Source: Chlorokybus atmophyticus
Lineage: Eukaryota; Plantae; Mesostigma and Chlorokybus algae
DNA length: 64,000 nt
Assembly: GCA_009103225.1 (NCBI GenBank)
Contig: RHPI01001819.1
Span: 62,001-126,000, forward strand
Reading direction: 5' to 3'
The notes under the pieces are model-generated. The model saw nothing but the letters and a program-made list of their open reading frames with translations. It did not search any database and was not told the origin of the DNA. Of this stretch, positions 8,863-59,754 are shown one piece after another; within the stretch, counting starts at the first letter, position 1; every line of letters begins with the position of its first letter. Position numbers and translations under genes: made by a program.

Positions 8863-8968
8863 CACACGATTTTAACGTGCAAGAACCATGCATGGTCCTT
8901 CCACGGACCTCGCGGGCCAACCATGATCCGTCCTCCGCCGACCAGGCATTCGTGGTCCGCGGAGGACG
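8863..8968. mobile_element. Terminal relic of the CACAC-type transposon family, interrupted by pogo element 2
   Basis: CACACGATTTTAACGTGCAAGAACCATGCATGGTCCTTCCACGGACCTCGCGGGCC resembles the reverse complement of the 43726-43785 terminus. Confidence 0.7.
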
Positions 8969-8970
8969 TA

Positions 8971-15500: not shown

Positions 15501-15545
15501 TAACGGGGTTATTCTCTTCAAACGAATTCTCTTAGCGGGGGTAGA
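12543..15545 (-). mobile_element. Tigger/pogo-like DNA transposon 3
   Basis: TA + CAGTGTACCCTCGCTAAGAG at 12541; right TIR CTCTTAGCGGGGGTAGA ends near 15545 and is fused to the next TIR. Confidence 0.85.
13400..15011 (-). pseudogene. Tigger-like transposase (CENP-B N-terminal HTH, Tc5 HTH, DDE_1)
   Basis: LKDGLYEWF...GFNAWQGWVHRFKKRH, VWNMDASGVF, KDRITAVLCVNADGSKK, KAWMNS, EAWDELTATTIANC; frameshifted, and the catalytic D-E motif is altered (MDAS). Confidence 0.9.
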
Positions 15546-28339: not shown

Positions 28340-28930
28340 CACACGGATTGACGCTCAAGGACCATGAATGGTCCGTGACGCAGGACCGGGGTTTTCCCCT
28401 GCTAAGTGAAATTGACGGACCATGTATGGTCCGGCTTTCATGGACAGTCGGACCATGCATGGTCCGAATTTCACGTGAATGGTACCATTGTCCCTTGGGA
28501 CGCACCAGGCATGGTGGCCAGTATGCATGAGATTTATGGACCATGCATGGTGCGATGCCCCCTGGAACAGTGGACCATCCATGGTTTGTTGCTTGCTTCA
28601 TGTCCGGTGACTAACAGTCGCACCATACATGGTCCATGGATACGGACCGCAAGTCATGTTTGTTACTGAGATTGCCTGGACCAATCATGGTGCGCTGCCC
28701 TCCTTGCACAGTGGACCACATATGGTGCCAGTCTGGTCGACAGTCGCACCATGAATGGTCCATGGCTACCGACAAGGTGTTGCGCATACGTGGTCCACAA
28801 GCGGCACCACGTATGGTCCTGCCAGGCACCGCACCATACATGGTGCGGTCTACCTTGATTTGGTGCACCAATCATGGTCTGTCATGATGTCACATGCATG
28901 GAAGCCATGCATGGTGTGCGTGCTGTTTCA
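28340..28930. repeat. Left subterminal array of GGACCATG(C/T/A)ATGGTCC-like palindromes
   Basis: Roughly 15-20 degenerate copies with irregular spacing, e.g. 28359, 28417, 28450. Confidence 0.9.
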
Positions 28931-29049
28931 TGCACCATGCCTGGTGCATACAATCCGCCACGCATACAATTCACAAAAATGCTGGAATGGACTGTCAAAG
29001 GACAGTCTGATCATGATCATCAATATTAAGCTAGCGTCATGTACTATAC

Positions 29050-29956
29050 CTACAGTCTCCTACACTGCACGCTGCTGTTGACAGTCGCAGCTGACAACAG
29101 CTTTGTTGTGTTGCACCTTCGCCTGGGCAGCTGGACCCCATGTGAAGCCACTCCCATCTTTCCACATTGTGTGCTGACTCCCAGCCTCAGGAGCCAACGA
29201 CAGCCTCAGGAGCCAGGGACACCCTTGTTTGACAGCCTCTGTGGACAGCCCCTGCAGCAAACTCGTGCATCAAATGTCTGCAAAACAACTGTAAGTCTAC
29301 CTGTGCTTACACAAGACATACTGTGTTGACACACACATGCAACTGTAGCACAGTAAACCACCCTACTAGGATGACAAGGGCTGTCGCATCCACTGCTTCT
29401 TGGGTTGCCATGGCTTTTTCTTCCTTCCCTTGCTCAACAGCCCTGCAATGTGTAGTCGCCTCGACAACTACCCAAGGACTGTCAATGACTTGCAGTTCAA
29501 TATGCATACCTGGTAGTTTGCGAGATTCATATCGCCACTCGCACCCTCCTTCAACCTCATCGTTGGCCACCAACCACTTTTTCTTTGCTGCAAAGCTGAC
29601 AACTGCTCGCAAGATCCTCTCGTCTGGATAAGACTCCATTCGCTCACGATCCTTGAATGGCAGCTGGTGACGACTGGTGCATACCGCGTGCTCAATGTGC
29701 TGGTAGTACTCGTACACGTCCATCGCCTGCTCTCTAGTGGGGGCGTTTGGTTTGGTGTCGCAAACAATTGCAGCTGCAAAATCCAAGTCCATTGCAACTG
29801 TTTGATCTTCACAGTCGGAGATGGCTCCAGCAGCCTGCACATGTCATACATCCGTCAATAGAGTGCATTGGCGACTGTCCATATGGGACAGCCTGCGACT
29901 GTCAAGTGACTGTGAGGACCACGAGCGCGCGGCATAACGTAACGCCATACAAGCAT

Positions 29957-29994
<38 letters not shown>

Positions 29995-31680
29995 AGGCAG
30001 TGAGCAACAGATAGTTGGACACTGTGCGTGATGTTGCAAGAGATGGTATGTGTGCTACTGTGAGTGTGCGAGCAAACGCGTGCCAATGAGTCATGCCATG
30101 CGCTGACAACAGCCCTTACTGACCTCTGTGTCTGTGCTGTGCCGAGCTGCGGTCGTAGGCAGTATGTCCTTGATGCAACCCGGCACCACAATGCGATCGT
30201 CGTTGCCGCATGCCTCACATGGACAGATGCCTCCGCCGGCCAAGAACATCATGGGCCACTCCATCTCCCTGCCCTGCATGTTGTTTAACACAAAATGTTC
30301 TTGCACTCATGCACCATACAGTCACAGCAGGAGCATATCCACAGCAAGCAATGTACCTCCAGAGTACGCCCACCATGGCAGCTGCTTGCCAGCTGGCCAT
30401 AGAGAAAATGCCTCTCTTTCACAGGTAGGCGAATGCCAAGGTTGCCATCCTCGCTTCTCACTGGCATCCAGTGGGTAACACAGACACTGTACGTCCGCAT
30501 TGGTTGTTCTGGCTCGCATACGGACTTGATGGTGGCGACGCCAACAACTACTGCGTTGTTGGCAATGTCAAACACCTGATCTTCAGCGAACCCGTCCGCA
30601 CCCCTGTTAGGAAATTCTGAGTTAGCAGGCAGCATGTGTGAATCCAGTACGCAGCCATGGAGGCACAGCTAAGCAAACCAGTGAGGACTGTAGAACTTGA
30701 TCGACAGCCGACAGCACAATAGTTACCTCTCTTTCAGCCAAGTGGCCCGGTACTGAGCATCTGCTAGAGGCTCAGCAGTCAAAGGCGCAAGCATGACCAC
30801 CTGCTGGTTGGCCCTCGAGTCCCTGCCAATCGAAAAAGTCATGCCCCAGCCAGCAGCAGCTTCAGTAGCGCGGCTGCCTTGGGTAGCTTCCCTGTCGCTG
30901 GATCGCCTTTGCTTCTTGGTAGCATTGCGTTCTTCCATGCTTTGCCCGTAATCACTACCGCGCTTCGCGCCAACAGAGTACTGTAGCTGGAGAACATGAC
31001 TCTTGATTTGTGCTGCAGAAACACAAGCAGATGAGACATGGCAGCGACAGTCCTTTGGTAGCCATCAGCAAGGAGGTCACATCTTGGAACATAGCATAAC
31101 GCAACTGGTTACTGAGCAACCGACAACTGAAAGCATGAATGATATGCAGGGCAAGGACTGTCAATGGCAAGACAGAGAAGGAGACACAATAAAACCGAGG
31201 AGAAGGTGCCATGCTGCTTGGAAGGCTTGCTTCAATACAGCTCAACTCTACTAGCAGCTTGCCTTTGGTCCATTTCAGGGTGTGGTTTGTGTCAAAAACC
31301 AGTGGCTCTGACGCCTGCAATACAGTCTCGCAGACATCGTCCAGCTCCTGCCGGTGCTGGGCGTTCTGCTTGAAGTCTGTGCCTTTCATGCCTTGAGGTG
31401 GTGGCCACTTGCTCAGCATCTCTTTTTTCAGCTTCGCCAGGTTGTTGATATGCGTTGTGCGCATATGCTTGAACTCTGGTTTCATCAGGAACTGCGAGCC
31501 CGTCACTTGGCCCAGCAAGTGGTTCCCCTTTGCTCTGAAGCAATCAGCTGCAGCGGGCATTTGTCTTGCCTCCCCAGTGGTCATGGTGTCAGTTGGACTG
31601 CCTAAACAAACAACTGAACTTGGAGCAAACAGTTTAACTTCACACTTGGGGCAACCCAAGCTGTCGACTGTCAACAGAGA
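29050..31680 (-). CDS. Multi-exon hypothetical protein inside the CACAC element, possibly TnpA-like accessory protein
   Basis: Protein-like segments in ORFs 30955..31674, 30285..30635, 30091..30306, 29307..29840 and 29060..29260 separated by intron-like DNA; VVVGVATIKSVCEP...YSVCVTHW...RLP loosely recalls Tnp1/En/Spm accessory domains. Exon structure not verified. Confidence 0.5.
29958..29992. repeat. (GT)n microsatellite
   Basis: Direct observation. Confidence 0.95.
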
Positions 31681-31981
31681 CTGTCATGCAAGCAAGCAAG
31701 CTTCCAAGCTTGCAAGCAACCTGCTCACCTTTCAACAGCTAAAATCAACTGGCAAACAGCACAGAAGAAGTGCAAGTGTCCTGGCACCACAGCAAGTGAG
31801 CAACCCAAGCTGTCGACTGTAAACAGAGACTGTCATGCAAGCAAGCAAGCATTCAAGCTTGCAAGCAACCTGCTCACCTTTCAACAGCTGAAATCAACTG
31901 GCAAACAGCACAGCAGAAGTGCAAGTGTCCTGGCACCACAGCAAGTGAGCAACCCAAGCTCGACTGTCAACAGGGACTGTC
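31651..31981. repeat. 149-bp tandem repeat, ~2.2 copies
   Basis: GCAACCCAAGCT... starts at 31651, 31800 and 31949. Confidence 0.95.
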
Positions 31982-32301
31982 GGACCAGTGCCTCACATAA
32001 ACAACCGCACAAGCCGCACAAGCGTTGTGAGTTCGCACAAGCCACACAAGCCGCACAAGTAGCGCAACAATGCAACTCGCCAAGAGAGCGACGCGGCTGT
32101 CGGTAAATTAGGGTTGAACTCGCCTAGGAATTGACGGCTGTCTGTGGGTTAGGGTTGGCGGCGTACACAAGCGTCGCAAGACCTTTGGCATGGTTGTTGT
32201 TGTTGTTGAGCAAAGATTGGGGGTGAAGGGTTTGGTTCAGGGTGCTGTTGGGTAGGCGTCGACAGTCTCTTGGCACAGTGGACAGTCCAAGGCAGTACAC
32301 C

Positions 32302-35300
32302 ATGGCTCGAAGGAGGTCGTCCACAGCGCCGCAGTTTATATGGGGCTGCCTTTACTGTATGAACAGCGTGCACGCTGGTCACCGTAATGCAGACGGCCAA
32401 CCTGGCATGGGAGAGACCAAGCCCACGAAAATTGCACAGCACTGGAACGGTGCTCTGTGCCGAATGATGCGCGTGCTCAGCAATAAGGGAGGGAGGAAGG
32501 ACAAGGCTACACTCGAAAAGTTGGCAGAGAAAATCCAGCAATCCATCAGGGTACGAACCCTCAGGCATTCTTGATCCAAGTTCTTGCAACATCCTGCCTG
32601 GACTGTCAATGATGTGCCTTGCGCGTGCGTACAGCGCATTGGCTCATGGTGCAGATACTTGACAGCCGTTGCTTGAATCCTGCGCATATCGGTTGTACTT
32701 GACAGCCGTTGCTTGAATCCTGCGCATATCGGTTGTAATATGAGTGCAACCGTCGTGTTCTTGGACTACGTGAAGTTTCGTGACATTTTTGAACGCACAA
32801 TGCAACTCACCAGCAGCGGCGTGCTGCAGGATGAGCAACTGCCCCCTTACCCCAATCCCGCAGTCTCAAACTTGAAGCACTGCAAGATGGCAGACATCAA
32901 GGCTATTCCAGGATATGTGAGTTGCTGAATTCGCACAGCAGCAATGAAACCATACTGCAACATGCGTACTAACCCTGCCATGTTTCAGACCAACGAACTG
33001 TACGAAGAGATGCAACAGCTGGCGGCTATGCATACCTGGACACGCAGAGCAACACGATCTCGAGGAGCAGGAAGATCAAGAGGAGCAGGAGTAGCAGGAG
33101 AACCACAGGATGAGGACGAGGACGAGGATGAGGACGAGGAGGGTGCGACACCCAGTCCACCGAAGCGAAAACCCTCAAGGCGTCGCCAAGCCGCAGCAGT
33201 GGATTATGCAGCGGAATTCGCCAGTGCTCTTGAAGAGATGAACAAATTCCAGGTGAAACGCTACCCCTCAACAGGTTCCAAAGCGCCACCCAAACTTTCT
33301 GCTGACTACTTGAGGGTGAGAACATATCATGACAGCCTATGCCAATGTAATGGTCTGTGTTTATCTTTGCGCTAGAGTCTGATGGTTACTTATCACTGCA
33401 TTAAACAGACTGACCGGGAGATACCAAACCTCAAGCTCATCCATCGTAGCGCTGGAGACAAGCACCAGCTGTGGAGACTGGATAATGTGGAGGATGCAAG
33501 AGCATCCACACGCATCCCAGTCAACGAGCAGTTCAAGTATCTTACGCACAACTGGTTGATCAAGGACTCAACCATCACTGGTGCTGGACTGGGACTGTTT
33601 GCCTGCGAAGACATTCCAAACGGTACGTGCACGTGTGTGCGTGTGTATCTTTGTGTGCATGTCTCTCTGTGTACTCGCGGATCACTCATGACTTGTGCGC
33701 ATCTGTGCAGAGGCTTACCTGTTGCCATATGACGGCAAATGGTTCAAGCAACAGGAGATGGAGGAGGTCTTGCATCGTTACCAGCAAATCCGCGAAATCC
33801 GACACCACCGGCGATATCATGTCAACCTGTTTCCACCAGATACACCAAGCCATTATCAGGTTGTCATCGACGGGCACCCCCGCACTGGCTGTGTAGCGGC
33901 TTACATCAATTCCGCACATGGGCACACTCAGCCCAACGTCATGTTCTACTCGGACTTCGATGACGTCGGCCACCCAGCTGTCACTGTGTATGCAACTAGG
34001 GACATCAAGGCAAGGGAGGAGCTACTCTTAGACTACACCCCTTTCCCTGCGCCACCAGACGGGCAGACATACCAAGTAAGTGTGATTGCATTGCTGCATG
34101 CCCAGTTTGCATGCCTTGTTGGTGCGACTGTCAATGCGAGACTGTCAATGACTCCACAACTGTGACACTGGAAGCTAACTTGCCTTCTTTGCTGGCAGAC
34201 CCAACTGTGGCAAACGGAGGATGCGGCGCAGAGGCTTGCGAGAAGTTGGAAGTTGACCACGGAGGACGCTATGTGGTTGCTTACCAGCAAGCCACCAAGG
34301 CAGCTGGGCGAGAGTGACTTCGCATATTCCATGCGTTTGGTCCAGCGTGTCTTCAGCATGCCCAATGCGGACGCAAAGACAAGAATGGTGAGTTGTACTG
34401 ACAGTCTTCCAACAATGACAGTCTCTTCGACAGTCTTATCGACAGTCTGTTGTTTTGCATTCCTGTCGCAGTGCACTTGCATGCACTGTGACATGTATGC
34501 TAACAACCAAGATCACGTGCATGTGTCAACAGATAGATTCTGAAGCCCATATTCAGCGTCAAATATCTGTTCATTTCTGTAAAGCGGTTTATGATGCTGC
34601 CTACGAAATGAAAGAGGCTGCAAACAGACAAGTCGACGCCCTAAAACAAGTCATTAGGGAGTTAGACCTACGGATAGAACAAGAGAACGTGATCAGGGTA
34701 CGTCAGCATGTGGTGCACCTTTCACTTCACACATTTGCTTAAACTGTTACCTGTTTTTGCAGGAAAAGGTCGCTGGTATCCAGAGAAAGACTGCCGAGAT
34801 GCACAGAACTCAGACAGCAGCTATTACTACCAGAGAGGGGGCTCTCACCAGGCAGGCGACAGCATTGGCACTGAATGGAGAGGACTGGGAAAAGGATTGG
34901 GAGAGAAAGATCCGGGGTATGCTGCAGAAGGGCTTCAAGGAGTCCAGAAAGGAATGGCTTGACGAACTCAAGCGGGACATTGTGCGTACACTTGTAAAAG
35001 AGCAGAGCGAAGCTGACACACGGGCGGAGGCACAAGCTGCAGCATCTTTATTGGTGGCGATCAACAACCCTGATACTCCCCATTCACACGACGATCATCT
35101 CCATCAGTTGAGAGTGCCCTTGCACCCCGCACCTCCACCACTGAAGACCTGGCTGGAGAGACAAGCTGAGCGTGAAAATCCTCCACCTGACACTCCACCT
35201 CCCCACAGTCCCAAGGACAGTTCACCTTATGACAGTCGCGCGGACAGTCCACCAGCCGACAGTCCACCTCACCACAGTCCACCTCACGACAGTTTCCATG

Positions 35301-37483
35301 ACAGTCCCCGTCCATCTGCCAAGAGAAAGAGAGAGAGAACAAGTGCCCCCATGTCTACACCCCCAGCTGAGAAGAAACGTCCCCTTCAGCCAGACACTCC
35401 TGCACGGCCAACTCTACCAGCTGTGCGGCCACAAGCTGGAGAGGAGGCTCTAGCAGCAGCGCGTGATACAATTGAAGGTTTCAAGAAGGCCCACGAGGAG
35501 CACCGCAAGGCCGTCAATGACGCATCGAAATTGAGCGAGGAAGTGGCAAACGCTGTGGAGATTTCTGCAGAACAGCTGTCATTCGCCCTCGGGCTTACAA
35601 GACAAGCATTGGTGAGAATAATTGCATCGCGTACAGTCTTTGTGGAAGAAGGGGGGGGGGGGCTTTGATAATCTGTTGTGGCCTCTGTACTTGATGTCTA
35701 TGTGCGACAGCAAGGACAAGAGCGCGTTCTTGCAACTCGTGACAACCTGCAGACCAGCCTAGTCAGTGTGAACGAGGCGCGCAAGCAGTATTACCAGCGT
35801 ACTCTTGACCTTGAAGTAGCGGAGTCGCAGCAACAGGTTGCAATCCTTCGCAAGGAGTTACAGGAGACGCAACAGAGGGCTGCAGATGCCAACGCTGAGG
35901 TCGCCCGGGTGCGCAAGGAGTTGGAGGAGACGATAAAGACAGCATCAAGAACAAATGATGAGTTCAACCTACTCTTAGCCGAGCTGCGCAAGAGGTTCCA
36001 GGTGTCGGAGCAGAGGGCTGGGGCATCAGATGCTGTTATTGCCAAGCTGCGCAATGATTTGGAGGAGACGGAGCAGAGGGCTGCATTAACCGATGCTGAG
36101 GTCAACAATGTGCGCAAGGATTTGGAGCATGCGGAGCAGAGGGCTGCAGCTTCCAACTCTGAGGTCGCCAAGCTACAAAAGGAATTGGCGGAGTTGCAGC
36201 AGAGGGCTGCCGCTTCCAACTCTCAGGTGGACAACCTGCGCAAGGAGAGGGAGGAGTTGCAGCAGAGGGCTGCAACCACCGATGCTGAGGTCGCCAAACT
36301 GCAAGAGGAGTTGGCTACAGCACTCGAAGCCGCCAAGGAGCGTGCGGCATCAATTGACGCCCAGATTCGCGGCCTCGAATTGCGAAACTTTGATTTGCAA
36401 TCGCGCATGCTGGCAATGGCCTCCAGCTCCTCTGCGGGCGCCAAGATTGGGGAAAAGATGGAGAGTTCTCGGCAGCGCATTCGCCAGCAGGAGCAGGAGG
36501 TAGCACAGCAAGCGGCGAGGCAGTCAGCATCAGAGGCCGTTGGAGGGGCTGTCGATGCAGCGGCTGTCGATGCCGCGACAAGAAGAGCCAATGAAGCAGA
36601 GCGGCAGCTGGCAGAGGCGCAAACCCGCTATCAAGAGTTGGAGCAGAGGCTGGCTGCAGTGCCTTCAACATCAGAGGCTGTCGGAGGGGCTGTCGACCCA
36701 TGCGTTGACGAAAAGCTGAATGAAGCGCTAGCAGGTGCAGAAGCTTTAGACAAGCAGGTGAGAGACCTCAAAGAACAGCTGGACAAGCAGGTGGCAGATC
36801 ACAGAGCACACCTCCAGCAGGTAGCACAGAATCGTGTGCAGTACCTCATCGGCAGAATCAGGGAGTGGGCGCGTGAGGTCTCCAACCAATTTTTTGCACT
36901 GCGAAACTACGAACGTACAATAGTGTTGGGCCGTTTGCCAAACACTCAGCTCTTTAACGATTGGCCACAAAGATTTCGGGAGGACCCAGTCGAATGGCCG
37001 GGTATCTTCATACGGCGTGCAGCTCAAATCAGGCAGGCGTGGCAGCAATCACAACGGAGTGCCATTCCATTCACTGGCTTTCAACAAGGTGCCAGTGGGT
37101 TCTGGGACTTCTACAGGAACGCCGAGTCGCACTACACTGGCATCTTGCAGGAACCCGAAATCACAAGGCGCGCTACCCTAATTTCCATGTTTGACGTAAT
37201 GGTTGTCATGCTATCAACGTCTGTGCACCACCTCCGTGACCTTGACGAAGGGATGGCTTCACTTCGAGGACCAGCGGCAGCGCCATTGTATCAGCTACAG
37301 CGTCCAATGGACTATGCCGCTGCATGGGCGTGGTTGCAAACCCCCGCAGGTGTATCAGCCCTCAGCAGCTACCGCGCTCAGTGCTCCATACCAAGACCTC
37401 CTCGTCCTCCTCCTCCTCCTCCTGCTGCTGGTGCTGCTGCTGGTCCTCCTCGTCCTCCACCTCCTCCTCCTGATGCTGGTTGA
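32302..37483 (+). CDS. Spliced SET-domain protein (putative lysine methyltransferase) with Cys/His-rich N-terminus, long coiled coil and Pro-rich C-terminus; probably frameshifted in exon 2 in this copy
   Basis: SET motifs IKDSTITGAGLGLFACEDIPNG (~33555-33622), AAYINSAHGHTQPNV and VYATRDIKAREELLLDY (~33895-34040); GT-AG introns join ORFs 32242.., 32713.., 32944.., 33382.., 33695.., 34253.., 34757.. and 35678.. (e.g. intron ~35612-35710 gives in-frame LTRQAL|QGQERV); 40-bp duplication at 32656-32735. Confidence 0.82.
35870..36320 (+). repeat. 63-bp (21-aa, three-heptad) repeats in the coiled coil
   Basis: EQRAAASNSEVAKLQKELAEL / QQRAAASNSQVDNLRKEREEL / QQRAATTDAEVAKLQEELATA and at least three further degenerate units. 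Confidence 0.9.
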
Positions 37484-37739
37484 TGTTTCCCTGGTTTATA
37501 GCTTTAGTGTAAGTTGCCTAGCAGTTGGCCTTTGCGCGCTGCAAGTAGATCTGCTGGTACGCTTGACCCTTCCTTGTGTACATAATCTGTGAAATGTACA
37601 AGTGTGTTACTCACAGTAACCAATGCGTGCTTAGTAATGCCTTGTGTAATGCCTTGTGCCAAAAACACACACTGATAGTGTTGTTACCCGACAGTCCTAG
37701 GGACAGCCGACTGTCCATGGGACTGTCAAGGAACAACAC

Positions 37740-40700
37740 TGATGAGACAAGTGATGCGTACCTGCCTCAGCCTCGCCTGCTTTGTAGTACATGATGTGCC
37801 TGTCGTAAAACATACGCGCAACCTCAGTTGTCGGCTGCTCTTGCCATCTGCCTTGATCAACTTGCTGCCAGTTGAGCTTCCTCTTGACCGCAATAGGTGA
37901 CACCTGTTGGTTGCGACAGTCCTTATTGACCACCCACCGTGGTAGGCCTTGGCGAGCACTCGCTGATCTAGGAGCAGGCTTCAGGTAGTCAACCAACATG
38001 TTGCCTTCATCGTCAACTTGAGGCTGTCGAACAATAACAATCCATAGCGGTGGATCATCAGATACAGGTGCTGGTGGGTCAGTTGGCACGCGAAAGTCAA
38101 AGACCGACTTCTTCTCATCCTCATGTCTCACAAGCAGCACATCCCCGGTTTCAGGCCATACTGGCAGAGGTATATCAGCTGCTCGCAATCGCAGCTCTGG
38201 GTTGCTGAAATCGTAAGCCAGCATGTAGGGGAGCAGCCTTGGTCTCTCCGTCAGCATCCACACTTTGCGCAGCAGCTGGTGGCCTCGGACAAGAATGTTG
38301 GTGTTTTCCAAACGCCCCACATGCAAGGCACCGGAGTCTGCGTCCATGCATTGATTTCCAACAGCATCTTTTTGCAGACTGTAACGGTTGACAGCAATGT
38401 ACACATGGCACTCGGTGTGAAAGAACATGAAGATTTTGTTGACGATGGCTGGCCTGTTTCCATCCAGCATCACAGCATCCTTGCAGTCGCGCCTGTGTGT
38501 GTGAGAGAGAGAGAATATTGGTCAGTCGTTGTTTGACAGTCTCAGCATTGACAGTCTGCGCGGCTGTCAATGCTGGGACTGTAGATATCAGAGATAGAGA
38601 CCCTATAACGGACAGTCGCACCAATGACAGTCGTTTGTGTGACAGTCGTTGGTGGGACTGTCGATGACAACTGTGCTGCATTCATAATCAAGATATAAAG
38701 CACACCTGTATACCAGGCCGTCCCTCATATAGGCTTTGTAGTCGCGCACTGTCCGTCGTGTCGGGGTGCCAATGGCAATGTTCTCTTGTGCACAGATGCT
38801 CTCGAACAAGATGTCGCTCGCGACATAATGAGTGTTGCCTCGCCCAATCACTATGCCTTGTGATTTGATGCGCCTGGAGTGTGCCAGGGTGGGGTATGCT
38901 TCCACAAGCGCCCAAATATCCTCTGCGTGCTTGATTGTGGCGACCTCATACCAGGTGGACCCGTTGAATTCTGTTTTGCAGATTGTAGACAGTATGTTGC
39001 CAACTCTATGGCAGAGCAGCAGGCCTGAACGCTGATCGTCACGCATGACGCCAAATAGTCGCACAAACCATCTCCTGACAGAACGTTTCATAAAGCTGAT
39101 CTCGTAATCCTTGCAGTTGGACGGGGTGTTGACATACAGCTTCACAGCGCTCAGCGGCGTAGCACCAGAACACGTCATGGCTGCCGTGTCTACGGATGTT
39201 GTCAAGCAGGTGGCAAGTTCCCGCAATGTGCTCCAAAATCTTTTTATTGGTGCCAAAGCAGATCTCGCTGTTGACCTTCCAGTACGTGAGCAATGCATCC
39301 GCGAGCTCCAGGCGGTCTGAGTCCCAACCAAAGCGCCGTGAGATGTCAATGAATAAGCGGAAGATCATGTGGAGACACATGACGAGATCTCTCCTTTCTT
39401 CGCTGAGCAGCTTGTGAAAAACATAGGGCACACCAAATTGCACGAAGAACTGGTGCTCCTGCGCCTTCCACCATCCAAGGCGACTGCTGAGGCCGTGTGG
39501 CCAGCGATTACCATTCTTCACCTCTCTTGGTCTTGCATTCCTCATCACGGACAGCCGACTGTCGATGTCAGCCTTGCTGACCTGCTCGTCCCCACCATCC
39601 ATCAGAGTGCAGGCTGTCAAGCTCTTGGCCAGTCCTTCGGCTAGCGTGTGCATGGTATCAAAGACCATGTCCTGACATGGGTCAAACTTGTACATCCGCC
39701 AAAGCCTCCACAAAGGCGACAGCCCGTTGACGCCATACTTCTTGGCCTTTTCTTTCTTGCGATTGGGATCTTCAGTGCTTTCAACTTCATCGGCCAGCTG
39801 GTATGTGGCCTCTGCAGTTCTTTTAGCAAATGGATGGCGACTGTGGTAGCGGCTGCTAGCATAGTGGAAGTCGGTCCTGTTGCTCCGAGTTTCTTCAACA
39901 ACATTGTTGCCAGTGCTGGGATCTTGAGTGACTTTTTTGGTGACAGTAGAGTGCTGGATATGAGTTGCCAGCAGGCAACAAGCCCTGCAACCGCATAAGC
40001 CGCCATTCTTGAATTGCCCCATCTCGCTTTGGGCTGGATTGTCACCGGCAATGTTCATGACCATGGCTCTCAGGAAAATCTTATCACCTGCAAACCATTG
40101 GAGGCATCAGGACTCATTGCTTCGTGCGCAGCAGCGCGCGTACGCGACTATGCACGGGACACAGCCGCGACTGTCGATTTGGACTGTCGGACATGGGACC
40201 TGGAATGGACAGTCGCATGGACAGCCTTGCTCAAGCGAACTCATACAAGCATGGCAGTGGAGTGCATAAGATTGACAGTCGCCGTTGACAGCGCAAAGAC
40301 AGTCCTGAGCTTAAACAAGCATAGCAATGCATTCCATACATATGACAGTCGCAAGAACAGCTGCGTGCGCGTGGCACTGCTAAACAGATGCATGCGAGCG
40401 TACCAGCCAATCGATGAGGGAGCTTGATGTCCACCTGGCTGGAGTCCAAACCGTAGTGCGTGGGGAAGCCCATGGCGTACAAATCCTCCAACTCATCCAC
40501 CATGGGCTTCATGAACGGGTTCAGACAGTCCTTGTCCGCGTCGAGTAGCTCGTCAACTGGGACAAATACTACTGGCATGATGGAAGACGCCTGTGAGCTG
40601 ACGCGCTTGCCTCCATTGAGCACAACGACGTTGATGACAAGGGTGCTCCGCTTTGTAGTGGATGCGCAGCTGAAACCATCACTGTGCAGCATGAGCCCAA

Positions 40701-42634
40701 TGTTGCGTGGGTCTCCAGTACACTGCTGCGCAGCCTCTTCATTCTCATAGGACTCGCAATGCCATTTCTGATAACCATCCCTGTGCTGCGACATGTCAAT
40801 GTCATAATTGTAGCGTCCACAGTCGCATTTGTTTGGCAGAGGGATGGTCTTCGTGCAGTCCCAAAAAGCAGTCAGTTCTCTCCATTTGCTGCCATGCCAA
40901 GCTTCCCATTGAGGAGCTGGGGGATGGTTTGCTGGCACGTTGAACCAGGTGTCTTTGTCTCGCCAAGCAGCAAGGTTGTCATATGCGATCGAAGGAACTT
41001 GCAGCCACGGACCGAGTCTTGGACCAATGGGCGTGTACAGAAAATCTATACACTCCTTGCGCGTGCGCCCGCATTCGCCTCCGCACGGCTGTTCCCACAA
41101 GCGTTTCAGAATCTTGTGGCGACTGTCGTCTTGGCAGCTGTCCTCGCAGTCACCGTAGCCTGATGGATAGGCATCTGGAAAGAGATAATTGCATCGTGTG
41201 CATGCTGTATATCTCTGTGACTCTGGCATTCCGATGGAAGTCAGCAATGCATCGACGGCCGTGATGTCAGCCGGCTCGGAGGGGTTGCGCTGGCCGAGCA
41301 AGGCATGGAGATCGTTACGGAGCTGACTGTGGTTGTAGGCGGGATCCTTGGCCAGCTGTACAATGGAGTCTTCGGCACCAAAAACAGTCTTCAGCACGTT
41401 GTTGATCAGTGATTGCTGTGCATGAGAGTCCTCCAAGTCTGTCAGCAACGACATGAACTTGTCCAGCATTTTTTGCGTGGGTGTTTCCGAGGACTGTTGT
41501 TGACGAGAAATGCCGGGTTGAGGTGCATCACATTGCGCTGAAGGCATTGGCGGTGGGTGCATACTTTCTTGCGCTGCCTCGTCCAGTCGCATGTGAGCCA
41601 ATGAAGTCTCCAACTCAACCCACTGCCCAATCGCAACATACGACTGTCAATGTAGGTAGCATGGATGGCAATGCTGAAAGTGCGCGCATGGTGGGCTACG
41701 GACGCGCATGGTGGCGCTACGGACAGTCGCAGGCATGCAGCATTCCCAGACATGGGCAGCTACAGTACGACAACTATGCGCGCAACAAGTTGATTGCTCA
41801 CCTTGCCAAGGCACCTTGGGCAAGAGCAAATTGTGTAGGACACTTCTTGCTGTTCTGGATCATCATCATCGCTACCAAGAGGCTCAAACATGTCTTCAAT
41901 TGGCATGTCAACAGTCGGCTGTCGATCCGACTGATGCTGAAGTGGAGCAGTTGCGGCGCTGCTGGAGCTGGGCATGTTGACAGTCGGCTGTGGATCAGCC
42001 TGATGTTGAAGTGGAGCTGTCGCGGCACTGCTGGTGCTGGCAACATCGAAAGTCGGCTGTCCACCTGACTGTTCCCTTTCGTGAAGTGTAGCTGCCGCTT
42101 CATTGCTGGTGCCGGCCAAATTAACAGTCGGCTGTCCAAGCACGGGATGCCTGAAGCAATCTTGCAGTCAGTGACACACCACATGCAATGGCACCATCGG
42201 CTGACAGTGGAGATCACAGCAAGGCAGCAAGTGCACTAAGTTGATCGACAGTCTCTTAGCATGGTGAAGGCTGTTTATGTACAGCATTCCTATTGTTAGT
42301 GGCATGCATACTGTCATGTATACTCAATGAAGAGCAGTACGCCAGGTACAACAGCGTGGTCAACTTACTGCTCATGCTGCTGGCTGATGTCGCTATGCTG
42401 CCCGAGCATGGCCGGATCTTCATGGGCGGGCTGAGGGTTGACAGCCTCAATGGGCTGGTCATCAACCACATGGTGCTGGACGACATCAGCCTGCTCCGGT
42501 AAGGGTAGGGAACTCTGTTGGCTGCGAAGGCGGTTGTTCCTACGAAAGGTGTTCCTCTTACTGGCTGGTTGCAAGTTGATTCCCAGCTTAGTACTAATGT
42601 CCTTGGCGAAGCGGACAGCCTTTTTACTGGCCAT
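37740..42634 (-). pseudogene. CACTA Tnp2/TnpD-like DDE transposase, spliced, one frameshift
   Basis: Start MASKKAVRF (42634); CSCPRC; DPRNIGLMLHSDGF; LNPFMKPMVDELEDL; IAGDNPAQ...CGCRAC; DMVFDTMHTLAEG; HLLDNIRRHGSHDVFWCYAAER; an apparent 2-bp deletion near 39145 switches frame (ER-AVKLYV). Confidence 0.88.
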
Positions 42635-42749
42635 TGGTACAGCTAGATTCTGCCAGCAAAGACACCGCCAACGAGGCCGCCGCCACCAACCAGAGCGCCG
42701 CCGCTCCCTCTCTGAGCGCAACCCTATTACGCAGACCATGTAGGTAGGA

Positions 42750-43785
42750 ACCCTATTGTTGGCCCATGCACGTGACTCGACAGTCGCACCATGCACGGTG
42801 CGACTGTCAAGTCTTCACTCCATGTAATTTGAAGATGCCGACCGTTCGATACGCTTGAATCGACGGTCAGATGAGGCTGGGCTGCGTTGTATCCCAGCGT
42901 CCGTGCAATCTCAGCTATGACGTGTATCATATACGAGAACATACCCGGTAAGCTATCTTATGGCAATGGGAGGGATGTGCTGGTTGGCCCTGTCAATGCA
43001 TTCACTTGTCCGAATGAATGCACTAACGGGGTCAATGAGCACATCCTCCGCTGCCATAATTTGCAGATCATTCTTTTTTCATCCGTCGCGCCGGTAGTGG
43101 CCAGTAGTGGCCCATGCATGGTGCGACTGCCCAGTCTTCACTCCATGTAATTACATAATATGCCGAACCGGAATCATTTACGTGAGGACCAACCTCGAAC
43201 CATGCATGGTTCAGCAACCATGGGGTACCGACCATGCATGGTCCCTACCCGCGGATAATCGGATTAGGAAGAGCCTGGTTGGGTTAAAGACCATGAATGG
43301 TCCGCAATCTTACGAAAATGTGGACCTGTATGAGCTTTCATGAGCCGCAGACCATGCACGGTGTGTGCTGCTTGTCAAAAGTGACCGATAAGCTCAGCGT
43401 GCACCAGCAATGGTCCGCCCAATGATTCCGGTTCGGACCAGCCACTTTGATGTTATCTACCGGAACATATATGGTCAAGCATTGATGTAGTCCGGACCAT
43501 GCATGGTCCGTAGACCCATTGACAGTCGGACCGGGAAAATGCCTGGTCCGGCTGCGAACCATTCATGGTCCGGACTTTCACGGCATATCGGACCGGTATA
43601 TCACCTGGTCCGGCCGCGGACCATGTATGGTGCGCGACTGCGCGCCAGGTATCGGGGCCCCGAAAGGACCATGGACGGTCCGTCCCCTGGGGACCAGGCA
43701 CTCGTGGTCCTCGGGGCACGGACCATGTATGGCCCGCGGGGTCCGTGGAAGGACCATACATGGTCCCCGAACGTCAATCCGTGTG
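42750..43785. repeat. Right subterminal array of the same palindrome
   Basis: Copies near 43110, 43200, 43230, 43290, 43495, 43620, 43720, 43750. Confidence 0.9.
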
Positions 43786-44402
43786 CAACCAGAGATTTAC
43801 CTCACTGTGCGGGCACGAGCAACAACGATGCTAGAACTGGGGGTGGTCAATGGCAGATGGGATGCCTACATGGCAGGGATCCTAGGGGTTCCCACCATTA
43901 CCCACGACATAAGAGCGCGGCTCCTGCGCGCAGTGTATTTCCAGCCCATGCTTCAGAATCACCGCTGGTGTGACGTGGTCAATAATCCAACACATGGGAA
44001 GGTACATTGCTTAGGGAGGCAGCTCATGCTGTACGCTGGACTTATGTGGAAGAACATGCTGCACGGGAGGCGGGCCCACAAACACCCGCTCCTCGGGGTT
44101 TCCCCAACAGCCACTGGCTACGCCGCCAGGTATGACCCCGGCCACACAGAGGCGCAATCTCCTGCGCCACAACCAGGGCAACCACAGGCAGCACCGCCAG
44201 CACCCAGGCCACAGCGTGTATACCAACAGCCAAGACAAGGACGGTTTGGGCCAGGCTGCGGTCAAGGAGGTTCTCAAGACCCAGTTGGTCTAGGGGCGCT
44301 TGCCGCACTGCACTCGACACCACCGGAGGAGACTGCAGCAGCAATCACTCCACGCACACGCTACCGACGATTCAAGCGGCTGCGCATGACGCCAATGCAG
44401 CC

Positions 44403-51419: not shown

Positions 51420-54400
51420 CACACTGCTTGACGTCAAAGTACCAAGAATGGTCCGTACCTTCGGACGCGCATGATTCCAACCAAGTGAATTCTGTGGACC
51501 AACAATGGTCCGACCGTCATTAATAGTCGGACCATGTATGGTTTCAACCTCATGTGAACGCAACTAAGATATTCACGAGTCGCACGATGTATGGCCCGCT
51601 GAATTTCGCTGGCGTCAGGACAAGGTAGCATCCGGGCAGCGGAGTAGGGGCCAAATTATAAAAGTTTGATAAATTCAAAAAATCGCGGGTCCGGCCAGGC
51701 GGACAACAAACCGAAACATTTATAACTATTACATTCAAGAGGATATCTTTTTTAAAAGTGGCTTGATCTCATGCTGACGGCACCGGTCACGCTGCGTGAC
51801 TAACGCACATACTGCGCATGAGGCCGCGGCGTTTTTAAATGATTAGGCAAGAACACAAGCATTGACAAGGATTTTAACATGCGATTTCTAGCAGTATATG
51901 TACGTATATGTACATATATATGTATATATACATATATATATACATGTACACACATATATATATTGATATTAATATTTATATATATATATATATGTGTATA
52001 TGTGTTTTCGCCAAGCCCACTCGAGGGGGAAGTGTATTAAAGAGATGGACAGGTTGGGCAAGCAACTAGCTAGGCCCAATAGAACTCACAAGGGCTACAA
52101 GGCTAGCAATGTTAGCAGTGTTATAAAAGTTAGATACACATTCATGATGCATATAAAGGTAGTAAGCAGGAACTAGCTAGGGCAAGGGAGGAGAAGACGG
52201 TGGAGGAAGAGGGTAAGGGTAATAAGAGAGAAACATGGGAAGAAGATTAGATAAGGAGCACGAGCACAATGTGGAGTTCGCTCCCCAAGAGGAGGCGAAG
52301 GTGAGGAAGGCCTAATGGCGTTTGTCATAAAGCAGAGGAGTGGAGCACACCCTGCGCCACTCCTCCCGAAGGGTTCTGTGGATGTTCGAAGATTGGCGTC
52401 TCAGTGCGTCATAGGAAATCGGCGTCTCCTACCCGTAGCGGATGGCACACCTGACAGCCCATAGCTGCCGTAGAGTCAGAGGCCTACAGAGGGACCACAT
52501 GACAAAAAGGGAGCTGGGGCGAACTGGGGCACCAACACCAAAAAGGAGTAAGACAGGTGAGAGGTCAATGCGAGAGCAGCCCATGAGCGAGAGCAAGCCC
52601 GAGAGCCAAGCCCAAATAGCTAAGGCAAAGTTGCAGGAAATAAAGAGATGGAGGTGACCTTCCTCCTCCACTGTGTCACGGGAAAGGCAAGTTGAAGGCA
52701 AGCCCATGTGCTTAAGACGATCCCCCGTCAAGAGGGCCTTGAGAGCGAGGAGCCACAGTAAGGAGCGGTGTTTATCGTTGACAGGAAGGGTGTGCAGCGA
52801 TTTCCACACCCTCCGCCAGAGGATGGAGGGTGAAGGAGGAGCTCAGCGTGTGCAGGCTCGGCCTGGTGAGCGCAGAGAGGAGGCGCGTTGAAGCCAGTAG
52901 CCGTGCCTGGGGGCATAATCTCAGAGTGAGAACCGAGAGAGCCTGCCTGGCGCTGCACAAGGCTAGCCTGGGAGGAGCGGGTCGATTGCTGAAGATTGGT
53001 AAGGGGACAACCTCCAGCCAGGACCTAACCTGTGTATGGAACGCCCTGCTCCTGGTCCAGCCAGGCCGGGCTGCCTATTACCTGCTTGCCATGCCACCGA
53101 GCTAGTGGAGGCCGTACTTGGACGCGTTGCAGCTGGGAGGAGAGGAGCGACACGCCCGTGGTGGGAGAAGACAACTTCGTGCCTTCAGCTCCAGCTTAGC
53201 TGAAGGACACCCCCGTACACATGGGGAAGGAGCAGTCTGTGACCAGCAGCACCGTGCGAAAGGTGCCATCGCTGCCCGAGGGGGGCCCACCACTTGGGAG
53301 GCTGGGGAAGAAGAGAACTTGCAGCGAGCAACTCCTTCCTCAACGGAGGGATGGCCTGTTAAAGGGAGGCTAACGTTGTGAAGGTGTTGGTCGGGGCATA
53401 ATGAGCAAGAAGCGCGGGAGGGTAGGGAAGGCGATGAAGGCCGTCCCACAAGTCACACACCCGCTGAAAGGCGGAGGCTGCCCACTCACAATAGCGTGTT
53501 TGGCTGCTCCCAGTACCTAGGGGTTTGGCATCAGGAAGCATAGTAGCAGGGTTGAAGCACCAAGGCTGGCGCAGCACCTCCTTATAAGAAAGGGGGGGGG
53601 GGGGGGGGGGGGGGCTCTGTTCACATGCATAGTGTACTCGCAAAACTTTCTCATAGGCCGCAGTGAACATTGCAGCCNAGTGTAGAAGGCCACCTAATGG
53701 CTCCACTGCTAAAACAAACAGAAAAAGAGCTAACGGGGTACAAAAAAATATATATATACTCTTTATGTACATGTGTGCGTACGATGTCATTTGACATGCA
53801 CAATGCATGCAAATATTAAACATGCATATATATATATATAAAACATATAACATTAGCAGTAGCATCGCAGCGTCAGCCTTTTATCGGCTCGTAATGAAGC
53901 AACTGCGTAGTTGAGGGATGTTAACAAGTTTGTCGTGCCACAAAGGGCTGTCATAGTACTCAAAAGCTGCCTGTGTCATTACTACAAGATATATAGTATA
54001 GCGCGTGTGAATATACAATATTACGTAACACATAAACATACTAGGTTTTTAATTTTTGTATGTTCAAAAATGGCATATACACGGCGGTTCACAAAATGAT
54101 GCGCACGGCGAAAGTTATGCATACAGTTTATATTACATTGTGCAATGACACTTGTATATGACGTATATGTACAGACATACATCAATGCATGTCACATACA
54201 TTAATGCATGTCACAAGAACATGTCGATATATTCGCAACTTCGTGCACATGCAATCGTGATAATTATGATAATTGCACCTATAGCCCCGCTTAGTAATTG
54301 ATAACTGACAGCCCGGCTGTCAGTTAGCCGCCGATCATTTGCGGCTGTTTACCTGTCGGTGAGCATTCTCCGACAGTCGGGGCGGCCTGTTAATAAGTTC

Positions 54401-54712
54401 ACAGACCTGTACAGAGCAGCAAAGTCACTGGTCCGTGCCGCACCAGATGTGGTACCGAACGGACCGAGTACGGTGCGCGACAGGAGGACCGCAAGGCCGC
54501 GGGACCTTACCTTGTTTAGATCCAAACCAGCGAGGCATGAATGGTGCGGCACGGCCCATTTCTGGTACGCGCCAGGCATTGGGGTCCTGAACGGACCAGA
54601 AACGGTCCATCCCCCGCGGACCACGCAGTCCTGGCTCGCGAGGGCCGGACCATGCGTGGTCCGCGGGGTCCGTGAAAGAACCATACCTGGTCCCGGAACA
54701 TCAAGCCGTGTG
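51420..54712. mobile_element. Non-autonomous or composite derivative of the CACAC element
   Basis: Left end CACACTGCTTGACGTCAAAGTACCAAGAATGGTCC resembles 28340; right end GAACCATACCTGGTCCCGGAACATCAAGCCGTGTG resembles 43750-43785; flanks TAC and TTG do not form a TSD. Confidence 0.65.
52050..53745 (-). mobile_element. L1-like LINE 3' fragment with internal deletion
   Basis: RT remnant PLALFLFVLAVEPL (~53700-53745), post-RT EVLRQPWCFNP...DLW, and zf-RVT-like MWKSLHTLPV...LLTGDRL...HLFISCNFALAIW (52429..52809). Confidence 0.8.
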
Positions 54713-59329: not shown

Positions 59330-59754
59330 CGCCGCTGGCCTGGTCAAGCTGGCTTGGCCAATACCAGGCCAGTTTGGCCAGGCTAGCGGCGTGGCCTGGT
59401 GCTCTTGGTATAGAGCACCAGGCCGCCCGCCAGGCCACCAGCAGCGGCCAACTGCGGTCAGCTGCGGCTTAATTTGCCGCAGCTGACCGCAGTTAGCCGC
59501 CAAAGCACAGTTGATAAGTGGCTTACTGACGATGTCGGACCGATGATGGTCCGTAAGCGCCCCTTATCAAGGACCATATATGGTCCGACTGAAGCCGGTT
59601 TTTGACCGGGACCAGCCCTGGTTCGATTTTCGGGGGTCAGTGGGACAACTACGTACTGTTTAAATCAGCCCTGGTCCCCGCGTGCAGACCAAGGCGGGGG
59701 ACCCTGGTCCGTACGTGCGGACCAGGGCCTGGTCCGTGGAAATGATTTCGTGTG
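59330..59754. mobile_element. Short CACAC-type terminal relic with hairpin cluster
   Basis: GGACC...GGTCC repeats ending GATTTCGTGTG at 59754; three stem-loops at 59330-59500. Confidence 0.55.

Follow-up and report, generated by a model that had tools for sequence, protein, structure and literature searches.

The 64,000-nt stretch of DNA analysed here (hereafter the window) harbours a complete CACTA/EnSpm-type transposon, whose body carries many copies of the 7-bp word GACWGTC. Our interpretation, held with moderate confidence, is that these copies form binding-site arrays for a DNA-binding protein encoded by the element itself, which would mark the element's own copies for activation or anti-silencing. 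Fifty-eight GACWGTC sites were found in the window, 54 of them within positions 28443-43527 and four in the remaining 48.5 kb, corresponding to 3.5 sites per kb in the element and 0.08 per kb in the flanks of the window. No 7-mer is commoner in the element than GACWGTC, and its density there is 38 times that of the flanks. The earlier note had estimated about 50 sites against approximately 1.9 expected and proposed a k-mer comparison with a Markov background. This comparison, carried out with flank-trained models of order 1-5, predicts 1.0-2.0 sites for the element and bears out the estimate. The few sites noticed outside the element were also precisely those detected in the count (15544, 46066, 54372, and 58978). 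In shuffles of the whole window 8.8 +/- 2.9 sites were present (maximum 16), and none of 100 shuffles attained 58. Models of order 4-5 trained on the element predict 21-44 sites, values that were set aside as circular, because GACWGTC dominates its own sub-words.

Judged by its termini, target site duplication (TSD), and subterminal repeats, the element is an autonomous CACTA/EnSpm-type (CMC clade) transposon (Table 1). The 5'-CAC...GTG-3' termini are present, and the terminal inverted repeats (TIRs) open with CACACGG, with CACAC in place of the canonical CACTA. The inner box of the left TIR, ATTGACGCTC, shares 8 of 10 positions with the motif consensus, ATTGACAGTC. The element possesses two separate motif classes, the body-wide GACWGTC word and terminal palindromes of the form ACCAT-NN-ATGGT. 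Fifteen of these palindromes were found in the element, all within approximately 700 bp of an end, and four elsewhere in the window, two of which (8885 and 51531) correspond to other termini of the same family. The two classes also occur fused. In the left subterminal region GACAGTC (or AACAGTC) is joined directly to the palindrome at 28443, 28614, and 28739, and further fusions of word and palindrome are present at 42779/42802 and 43521. The 40-nt composite palindrome at 42774-42813 reads GACAGTC-GCACCATG / CACGGTGC-GACTGTC. Contigs of two sequencing runs, both of DNA, contain many copies of the element with 80-100% identity over 37601-43600. No spliced joints were detected when these DNA contigs were aligned to the same interval. 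One copy in sequencing run X2 skips 40095-40396, which spans the array at 40169-40350.

Table 1. Coordinates of the transposon, its genes, the main groups of GACWGTC sites and a related element in the window (strand ".", unassigned).
Feature	Position	Strand	Remarks
Complete CACAC-ended CACTA/EnSpm-type transposon	28340-43785		15.4 kb; 35-nt TIRs; 3-bp TSD CAA
TSD CAA	28337-28339 and 43786-43788		3 bp; both sides of the element
Left TIR, starts CACACGGATTGACG	28340-28374	+	35 nt; 89% complementary to right TIR
Right TIR, inner box ATTGACGTTC	43751-43785	-	
Left subterminal array, GGACC/GCACC-ATGCATGG-TCC/TGC palindromes	28350-28975	.	
Right subterminal palindrome array	42774-43769	.	composite site also at 43521
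Gene 3	29310-31683	-	ORF blocks 31683-30958, 30668-30288, 29843-29310
SET-domain gene with long C-terminal coiled coil	32302-37483	+	PF00856, 31.2 bits (cut-off 22.4)
Transposase gene, CACTA/EnSpm-type	37697-42814	-	ORF blocks ~41646-40400, 40106-39100, 39364-38700, 38473-37700
3 sites just internal to left subterminal region	28990-29086	.	28990, 29001, 29080
3 sites, 3' part of gene 3	29477-29903	.	29477, 29873, 29897
7 exact sites, in or beside the gap between diverging gene 3 and SET gene	31666-32287	.	gap density 8.1/kb
6 sites, putative intron after SET-domain exon	34126-34447	.	12.9/kb
4 sites, proline/serine-rich linker of SET gene	35231-35306	+	phase 0 of the open frame; read as D-S-P/R repeats
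3 sites, converging 3' ends of SET and transposase genes	37690-37727	.	
6 sites, putative transposase intron	38535-38662	.	26.5/kb; 15-bp period, unrelated spacers
6 sites, putative transposase intron	40169-40350	.	20.5/kb
4 sites	41642-42253	.	41642, 41722, 41979, 42247; plus degenerate copies in 69-bp tandem repeats
CACAC-ended element, probably non-autonomous	51420-54712	+	3.3 kb; same subterminal palindromes

Three genes were predicted in the element, with approximate exon borders taken from ORF blocks. The transposase matches PF02992 (Transposase_21) with 22.6 bits (E 6.8e-5), below the cut-off of 28.6 bits, and its translation contains stretches similar to LHSDGF, VFDTMH, and WCYAAER. 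Exhaustive HMMER searches revealed 127 homologues (best E 3e-24, 36% identity), one of which lies in a CACTA-like plant locus of 13 kb and carries a weak Transposase_21 annotation. These relatives are distant transposases only, with at most 36% identity. The one homologue locus examined for internal word arrays, L121, is an AT-rich land-plant CACTA that lacks them and is uninformative in this respect. In the SET-domain gene, the PF00856 match lies above the Pfam gathering score and covers the C-terminal half of the domain, and NSAH stands in the translation at the expected place of the NHSC motif. Comparison with solved structures gave SUV39H2, SET1-type proteins, and KMT5A as best matches, all of them too weak (E 0.4-0.9) to place the protein in an activating or a repressive subfamily.

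Most sites are located in non-coding DNA. The earlier note had placed the clusters in introns and intergenic gaps, which holds for 41 of the 54 sites; the other 13 fall inside ORF blocks, four of them in the low-complexity D-S-P linker, although these figures depend on approximate gene models. With the same approximate models, the density is 6.2 per kb in non-coding DNA and 1.5 per kb in ORF blocks (p ~1e-6). Two introns reach 20-26 sites per kb, whereas the SET exons (32929-34095) and the 2.2 kb at 35321-37483 with the coiled-coil exon contain no GACWGTC site. Introns contain clusters, as do the upstream regions of the three genes. Inside ORFs neither the phase nor the strand of the word is constant, and both D-S-P and P-T-V peptides result, therefore what recurs is a word in DNA rather than a peptide.

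Relative to transcription, the A-strand of the word lies on the transcript in 23 cases and on the opposite strand in 20, therefore the feature acts at the DNA level. Because many sites are intronic, an RNA signal in the element transcripts could otherwise be envisaged, for instance one that enhances splicing, directs export, or is targeted by small RNAs. However, the lack of strand bias, together with the sites in untranscribed gaps and subterminal regions, makes such a signal extremely improbable.

A description of the sites as far from the termini applies to the majority, since 49 of the 54 are internal and up to 7 kb from an end, but not to those at 28443, 28739, 42779, 42802, and 43521, which are subterminal and fused to the palindromes. 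These composite units at both ends, and the resemblance of the word to the TIR box, would fit a role restricted to the mechanics of transposition. The word would then serve as a half-site within the subterminal repeat unit, contacted by the transposase or a TnpA-like partner when the ends are recognised and paired in synapsis. Internal copies would be spill-over that plays no part in regulation or chromatin. Nevertheless, the internal position of most sites argues against it, and the peak densities are found in introns and not in subterminal regions, the right subterminal kb holding a single site. Internal sites for a catalytic complex would also be expected to favour aberrant internal cuts. 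Furthermore, the related 3.3 kb element retains the palindromes almost without exact copies of the word. It contains one GACWGTC but five GACAG[T/C]C sites, mostly T-GACAGCC, at 1.5 per kb against a background of 0.2 per kb, a 7-fold enrichment (Poisson p = 6e-4) that is based on five sites only. We therefore consider an exclusively mechanical role quite unlikely.

The word is better described as directional than as palindromic. With the central A as orientation guide, position -2 is T in 32 of the 54 sites, position -1 is T in 27, and position +1 is never A. This asymmetry of the flanks indicates a directional word of approximately 10 bp, with the consensus (A)TT-GACAG[T/C]C-[not A], where the final base is G, C, or T. 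The palindrome proposed in the earlier note is thus not a true one, and a reading as a dimer site was likewise ruled out by the asymmetric flanks. The extended form given there, TTGACAGTCGC, stands as a consensus but not as an exact form, with just five exact copies; the exact copies of TTGACAGTC and GACAGTCGC number 18 and 15, respectively.

Half of the sites read TGACAG, which we take to be the core of TALE-homeodomain (KNOX/BELL/MEIS) sites, and the intronic clusters, like those in front of each of the three genes, occupy the usual places of enhancers. The element could accordingly have gathered sites for a host transcription factor, for instance a stage-specific one, as enhancers with no reader of its own. 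Nonetheless, the element shows no enrichment of TGACAG[G/C]T, the canonical TALE site (two copies, against seven in the flanks), and TGACAG without a following T is only ~1.7-fold enriched; on these counts the TALE-homeodomain reading was ruled out. The T precedes the core in just 27 of the 54 sites, and the unit retained is GACAG[T/C]C. The word also occurs at chance level across the surrounding 48.5 kb, and the machinery of the element itself is suggested by its fusion to the family-specific palindromes and by its similarity to the TIR box. A host factor is, for these reasons, an unlikely reader of the sites.

Similar to the flanks, the core shows sharp preferences. Among one-mismatch variants, only those at position 1 (any base) and the T6C change (GACAGCC) are enriched. 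At the other five positions 27 variants were found in total, against ~25 expected from the flanks, therefore no decayed copies are present. The cores in the arrays are identical, while spacers of equal length average 30% identity and adjacent spacers 25-60%. The exactness of the cores is in part a matter of ascertainment, because the sites were chosen as exact matches. None of the 40 best-supported differences between sister copies (from ~420 variant places in two sequencing runs) changes a core. This agrees with retention of the core but is not significant, as only ~1 hit was expected.

The sites are spread over 33 separate loci, therefore one or two tandem expansions cannot account for them. 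This bears on the possibility of a neutral by-product, in which a minisatellite core prone to slippage or conversion has spread within one copy with no function. Some sites do lie in clear tandem repeats, including a 149-bp repeat (31651-31948) that takes in part of the cluster at 31666-32287, 69-bp repeats (41902-42138) that correspond to Q-P-T-V peptide repeats on the minus strand, and arrays with periods of 12-15 bp, such as the 12-bp array at 34417-34447 within the 34126-34447 cluster; non-coding DNA is also where neutral repeats persist. However, the separate loci have unrelated flanks and spacers, no excess of decayed copies was found at five of the seven positions, and both orientations are present with consistent flank preferences. 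A purely neutral origin thus appears very unlikely.

The cis half of the earlier proposal, an address code of the element, is consistent with all of these results: the word is element-specific, mostly non-coding, arrayed, and strand-blind, with a sharp position-specific tolerance and no decayed copies. We read (A)TT-GACAG[T/C]C-[G/C/T] as a cis-element of the transposon and a candidate protein site.

Searches with Pfam, ESM Atlas, AlphaFold2, and Foldseek could not detect a DNA-binding domain in gene 3, the N-terminus of the SET gene, or the N-terminus of the transposase. The Pfam scan of 20 ORF blocks, with E up to 1, revealed the SET domain, the weak Transposase_21, and weak sub-threshold matches that are due to coiled-coil or low-complexity composition. 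The two largest ORF blocks of gene 3 gave only scores at noise level in ESM Atlas (0.65-0.72), and the AlphaFold2 model of gene 3 has a pLDDT of 43. For transposase exon A, AlphaFold2 (17 sequences) predicted a helical stretch at residues 45-126 with a mean pLDDT of only 57, and Foldseek found no match with E < 0.6 for this model in the PDB. Word-indexed protein searches with the transposase ORFs of 460 and 341 aa and a 156-aa piece retrieved no sister copies, and two exact-protein contig look-ups gave no match to the element proteins; the family is therefore evidently absent from those collections. A set of 120 metagenome loci with three consecutive GACAGTC was also considered as possible relatives. 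These loci possess neither the palindromes nor protein or DNA similarity to the element, and were therefore rejected as unrelated tandem repeats.

In the mechanism that we favour, an element-encoded protein would bind the word, and the candidates for this binder are the N-terminal DNA-binding region of the transposase, an isoform with DNA binding only, and the gene 3 product. Its sites may have accumulated partly by formation of short tandem repeats, in DNA able to tolerate them: the introns, the upstream region of each gene, the gap where 3' ends converge, and codons for a disordered linker. When densely occupied, the sites would label cognate copies along their entire body, so that the genes on them stay transcribed, as self-activation or anti-silencing comparable to the action of VANC on VANDAL21 and of TnpA on Spm termini. 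Protein binding, the encoding of the binder by the element, and activation as the outcome are all steps that we infer. A more elaborate possibility is that an element-encoded reader of GACAG[T/C]C recruits the element's own SET/coiled-coil protein, so that a histone mark would be written exclusively on copies of the element, as a VANC-independent, writer-based form of anti-silencing in an early-branching streptophyte alga. We regard this as quite improbable. The SET protein and the motif are connected by their presence on the same element and nothing more, and a role for this protein in the motif system is speculation. Writer-based anti-silencing is no more likely than a simpler binder, which could be the transposase through its DNA-binding region or else an accessory product.

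The layout of the word matches that of the VANC/VANDAL21 system. VANC proteins are anti-silencing proteins of Arabidopsis VANDAL21 and VANDAL6, which belong to the Mutator superfamily, and are associated with YAGTATTAY-type motifs (PMC5735166, PMC10398659). Both systems present a motif of 7-10 bp, strongly enriched in a single transposon family and scarce outside it, distributed throughout the element in mostly intronic, intergenic, and terminal non-coding DNA, with dense local arrays that often have one orientation and are tied to dynamic tandem repeats. Variant motifs in related subfamilies and tandem peptide repeats in the element's own proteins are further similarities. The VANDAL elements are, however, MULEs, whereas here the element is of the CACTA/EnSpm type and the host is a streptophyte alga. 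Pfam scans of the 20 ORF blocks recognised no VANC-like protein. Binding and loss of methylation are features of the VANC system. The element described here also adds a second motif class at its ends and a SET-domain gene.

Within the same superfamily, TnpA of maize En/Spm and Arabidopsis Spm1/Spm3 is an element-encoded regulator that binds clustered motifs of 10-12 bp (10.64898/2026.08.24.746577). It activates or demethylates cognate copies, requires high motif density, and recognises family-specific motifs; the Spm motifs, binding, and hypomethylation are all limited to the termini, and TnpA-like proteins are reported as restricted to flowering plants (10.64898/2026.08.24.746577). The subterminal ACCATGCATGGT palindromes correspond to this terminal layout. 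In contrast, GACWGTC is body-wide, and terminal confinement is found here in the separate palindrome class. TnpA-like proteins possess two tri-helical HTH motifs, and no such protein was recognised in the Pfam scans or in the low-confidence models of transposase exon A and gene 3.

Transposons that carry an epigenetic enzyme have also been described. Fungal EnSpm, Plavaka, and KDZ elements carry TET/JBP dioxygenases, and share with the present element the CMC clade, CA..TG-type termini, TSDs of 2-5 bp, and an epigenetic enzyme thought to aid escape from silencing (PMC12730594). The enzyme there is a dioxygenase and here a SET-domain protein, and targeting motif arrays are not described in the accessible part of the source (PMC12730594). 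Other comparisons are provided by host genes with a fused DNA-binding domain. In SETMAR/Metnase and PRDM9, a sequence-specific DNA-binding module (a mariner transposase domain and a zinc-finger array, respectively) accompanies the SET domain, and methylation is aimed at a short DNA word. Unlike these, the SET gene described here belongs to a mobile element and has no recognisable DNA-binding domain.

To our knowledge, sequence-specific self-recognition by transposons has been demonstrated experimentally in flowering plants only, for the VANC proteins of Arabidopsis VANDALs and for TnpA of Spm in maize and Arabidopsis. The same cis-architecture was found here in a CACTA-type element of a very early-branching streptophyte alga, alongside a gene resembling those of histone methyltransferases. 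Confirmation of a binder would mean that 'address codes' in the non-coding DNA of transposons are either old or repeatedly arising. The element would then offer a compact system, with one word and clear tolerated and forbidden variants, for studying how a transposon targets a chromatin change to itself and leaves the host undisturbed.

An exact count found 58 GACWGTC sites in the window, and 54 of them lie within 28443-43527, inside an autonomous transposon with CACAC ends. The remainder are four lone sites at 15544, 46066, 54372 and 58978, exactly those listed in the earlier note. Shuffles of the whole window gave 8.8 ± 2.9 sites (maximum 16) against the 58 observed, and Markov models of order 1-5, trained on the 48.5 kb of flanks, predicted 1.0-2.0 sites per element length against 54. 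GACWGTC is the top 7-mer of the element by frequency, and its extended forms TGACAGTC (27 copies), TTGACAGTC (18) and GACAGTCGC (15) have zero copies in the flanks. The excess claimed in the earlier note, and the k-mer comparison with a Markov background suggested there, were both borne out. The enrichment of the word is specific to the element, and the array is a genuine cis-feature, both strong and well defined.

The element possesses terminal inverted repeats (TIRs) of 35 nt, which start with CACACGGATTGACG, and is flanked on both sides by the 3-bp target-site duplication CAA. Dense arrays of a different motif lie within ~700 bp of each end, their units being palindromes of the form GGACC/GCACC-ATGCATGG-TCC/TGC. 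Exhaustive HMMER searches detected 127 homologues of the predicted transposase (best E 3e-24, 36% identity), one of them annotated as Transposase_21 within a land-plant CACTA-like locus. The inverted repeats, the 3-bp duplication, the subterminal arrays and the predicted transposase together place the carrier, by its sequence, among the CACTA/EnSpm-type (CMC clade) transposons, although CACAC is not the canonical terminus. The SET gene encodes a SET domain followed by a coiled coil of 600 residues. A 63-bp (21-residue) repeat is present in six copies at 35838-36316, within the coiled-coil exon, so the coiled coil has probably expanded via in-frame tandem duplication.

Features of the transposon and of related sequences in the window, with the density of GACWGTC (gene borders are approximate and ORF-based)
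Feature	Position	Strand	GACWGTC	Remarks
Complete DNA transposon	28340-43785			carries the word array
Transposase gene, large, split	42814-37697	minus		Transposase_21 match (Pfam, weak)
SET gene	~32300-37483	plus		PF00856, 31.2 bits vs cut-off 22.4
Gene 3	~31683-29310	minus		no assigned function
Putative transposase introns (two)			26.5/kb and 20.5/kb	
Intron after SET exon			12.9/kb	
Converging 3' gap			12.1/kb	
Gap between diverging gene 3 and SET gene			8.1/kb	
SET exons			0	
2.2 kb with coiled-coil exon	35321-37483		0	
Second CACAC-ended element, 3.3 kb	51420-54712			subterminal GGACC-N6-GGTCC palindromes shared with main element
Solo left-type end, same family	~8863-8990			starts CACACGATTTTAACG at ~8863
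Right-type end, same family	~59500-59754			terminates ...TTTCGTGTG at ~59754

The word had been described as a palindrome, which its surroundings contradict. With sites oriented on the central A (GACAGTC), 26 of the 54 have A at -3, 32 have T at -2 and 27 have T at -1; A occupies -1 in just two sites, and +1, which may be G, C or T, is never A (0/54). Of all 54 sites, 25 terminate in TCG. Given these asymmetric flanks, the word is better regarded as a directional unit of ~10 bp than as a symmetric palindrome. One-mismatch neighbours of the core were compared between the element and the three-fold longer flanks, and only two kinds were enriched, namely those altered at position 1, whatever the base (22 element copies vs 13 flank copies) and those with C at position 6, GACAGCC (27 vs 10). 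Mismatches at the other five positions number 27, against ~25 predicted from the flanks, so essentially no decayed copies accompany the 54 exact ones there. Exact copies in such number, with near-zero decay at five of seven positions, form the profile of a putative recognition site, unlike that of neutral repeats, and spread of the word as a neutral minisatellite is accordingly very unlikely. The sites are distributed over 33 separate places; the period within arrays is mostly 12-15 bp from centre to centre, and spacers of equal length share a mean identity of 30%, which is near random. Orientation is mixed inside every gene, with the A-strand on the transcript at 23 sites and on the opposite strand at 20. 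Such a mixture points to recognition of the word as DNA and speaks against a signal in RNA, a reading that we consider extremely improbable.

With exons approximated by ORF blocks, on which all coding and non-coding counts rest, 41 of the 54 fall in non-coding DNA (6.2/kb vs 1.5/kb in ORF blocks; binomial p ~1e-6). The placement in introns and intergenic gaps proposed earlier thus stands under these approximate gene models. Contigs of the two element-bearing sequencing runs, X1 and X2, are DNA contigs and contain no spliced joints, and no RNA run was found. Copies of the word within open frames lie in repetitive, probably disordered segments, being translated as D-S-P in the linker of the SET gene and as P-T-V in 69-bp repeats at the 5' end of the transposase. 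Since the two sets of copies differ in both strand and phase, the recurring unit is the DNA word. A 40-bp sequence is perfectly duplicated in tandem at 32656-32735, before the first clear SET-gene exon, and each unit includes TGACAGCC, the tolerated variant of the word. The element also harbours (TG)n/(GA)n microsatellites at 29973-30003 and 38494-38514, and contigs of run X1 seem to be cut at the latter.

The word directly abuts the subterminal palindrome at 28443, 28739, 42779/42802 and 43521, and the earlier description of the clusters as far from the termini does not apply to these sites. An AACAGTC form at 28614 is likewise joined to the palindrome, and at 42774-42813 the two motifs build a 40-nt composite palindrome with arms 90% complementary. 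Both TIRs contain an inner box, ATTGACG[C/T]TC, which shares 8 of 10 positions with the consensus ATTGACAGTC; a rough estimate gives ~0.04 as the chance that agreement this close arises anywhere in the TIR. From this fusion and likeness, the word looks like one module among the element's own recognition sequences. A role purely in the mechanics of transposition seems quite unlikely.

The 3.3 kb element has an interior of AT-microsatellite and poly-C/G in which no long ORF was noted, and the three bases on either side of it, TAC and TTG, differ from each other and so form no matching target-site duplication. For the termini at ~8863 and ~59754, no partner ends were identified in the window. The subterminal palindromes recur in all three and are therefore the terminal signal that members of the family have in common. 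Exact GACWGTC is present only once in the 3.3 kb element; GACAG[T/C]C is present five times, four of them as T-GACAGCC, at a density of 1.5/kb, compared with 0.2/kb for the remaining flanks (Poisson p 6e-4). As judged from these relatives, the word spread along the body is a property of the autonomous element, and there is a hint that the variant T-GACAGCC tracks a subfamily.

Contigs of X1 and X2, aligned to 37601-43600, contain many copies of the element with 80-100% identity. Among them are copies skipping 40095-40396, 42705-42761 and 42810-43185, which indicates that the family is polymorphic in its non-coding parts. The first stretch, skipped in one copy, contains an entire six-site array, and the last falls between 41-nt direct repeats at 42789-42829 and 43112-43152. 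Word depth is greater over ORF blocks than over array regions, suggesting that arrays diverge faster than exons. Of about 420 variant places, none of the 40 best-supported falls in a core, where ~1 was expected by chance; this is no more than consistent with conservation.

The pattern, here from sequence alone, is that reported for the sequences targeted by VANC in Arabidopsis VANDAL21. The short motif there shows strong enrichment in a single family, is found in introns, between genes and in terminal non-coding DNA, and makes up high-density arrays that frequently keep one orientation (PMC5735166). It evolves through the formation of tandem repeats, related subfamilies have variants of it, and the proteins of the element contain tandem peptide repeats (PMC5735166). 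Spm belongs to the superfamily of the element studied here, and its TnpA binds family-specific motifs that occur in clusters, activating and demethylating cognate copies (10.64898/2026.08.24.746577). Motifs and effect are limited to the termini in Spm (10.64898/2026.08.24.746577), whereas the word here is body-wide. Considering this layout and precedent, the best reading, towards which we lean on balance, is that a protein encoded by the element itself binds the word. By densely occupying the body of cognate copies, this protein would mark them for activation or anti-silencing. The candidate binder may be the DNA-binding region of the transposase, an isoform of that region, or the product of gene 3; transposases have been argued to be sequence-specific regulators, with a DNA-binding region often split off by splicing (10.64898/2026.08.24.746577). 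Capture of sites for a host factor, which would place the binder outside the element, is unlikely.

The earlier note had proposed that the SET domain takes part in this system; the only tie found between the SET protein and the word is co-location on one element. Pfam scans of the ORF blocks recognised no DNA-binding domain in the SET gene. Against solved structures, SUV39H2, SET1-type and KMT5A all match the SET domain at E 0.4-0.9, and being alike they assign it to no activating or repressive class; the translation has NSAH at the expected place of the NHSC motif. Same-clade fungal transposons with TET/JBP genes are a precedent for epigenetic-enzyme cargo (PMC12730594). That an element-encoded reader of the word recruits the element's own SET writer is, in our judgement, quite doubtful. 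The word array itself most likely represents a self-recognition code of the transposon; its layout is VANC-like, and its carrier is a CACTA-type element from an early-branching alga.
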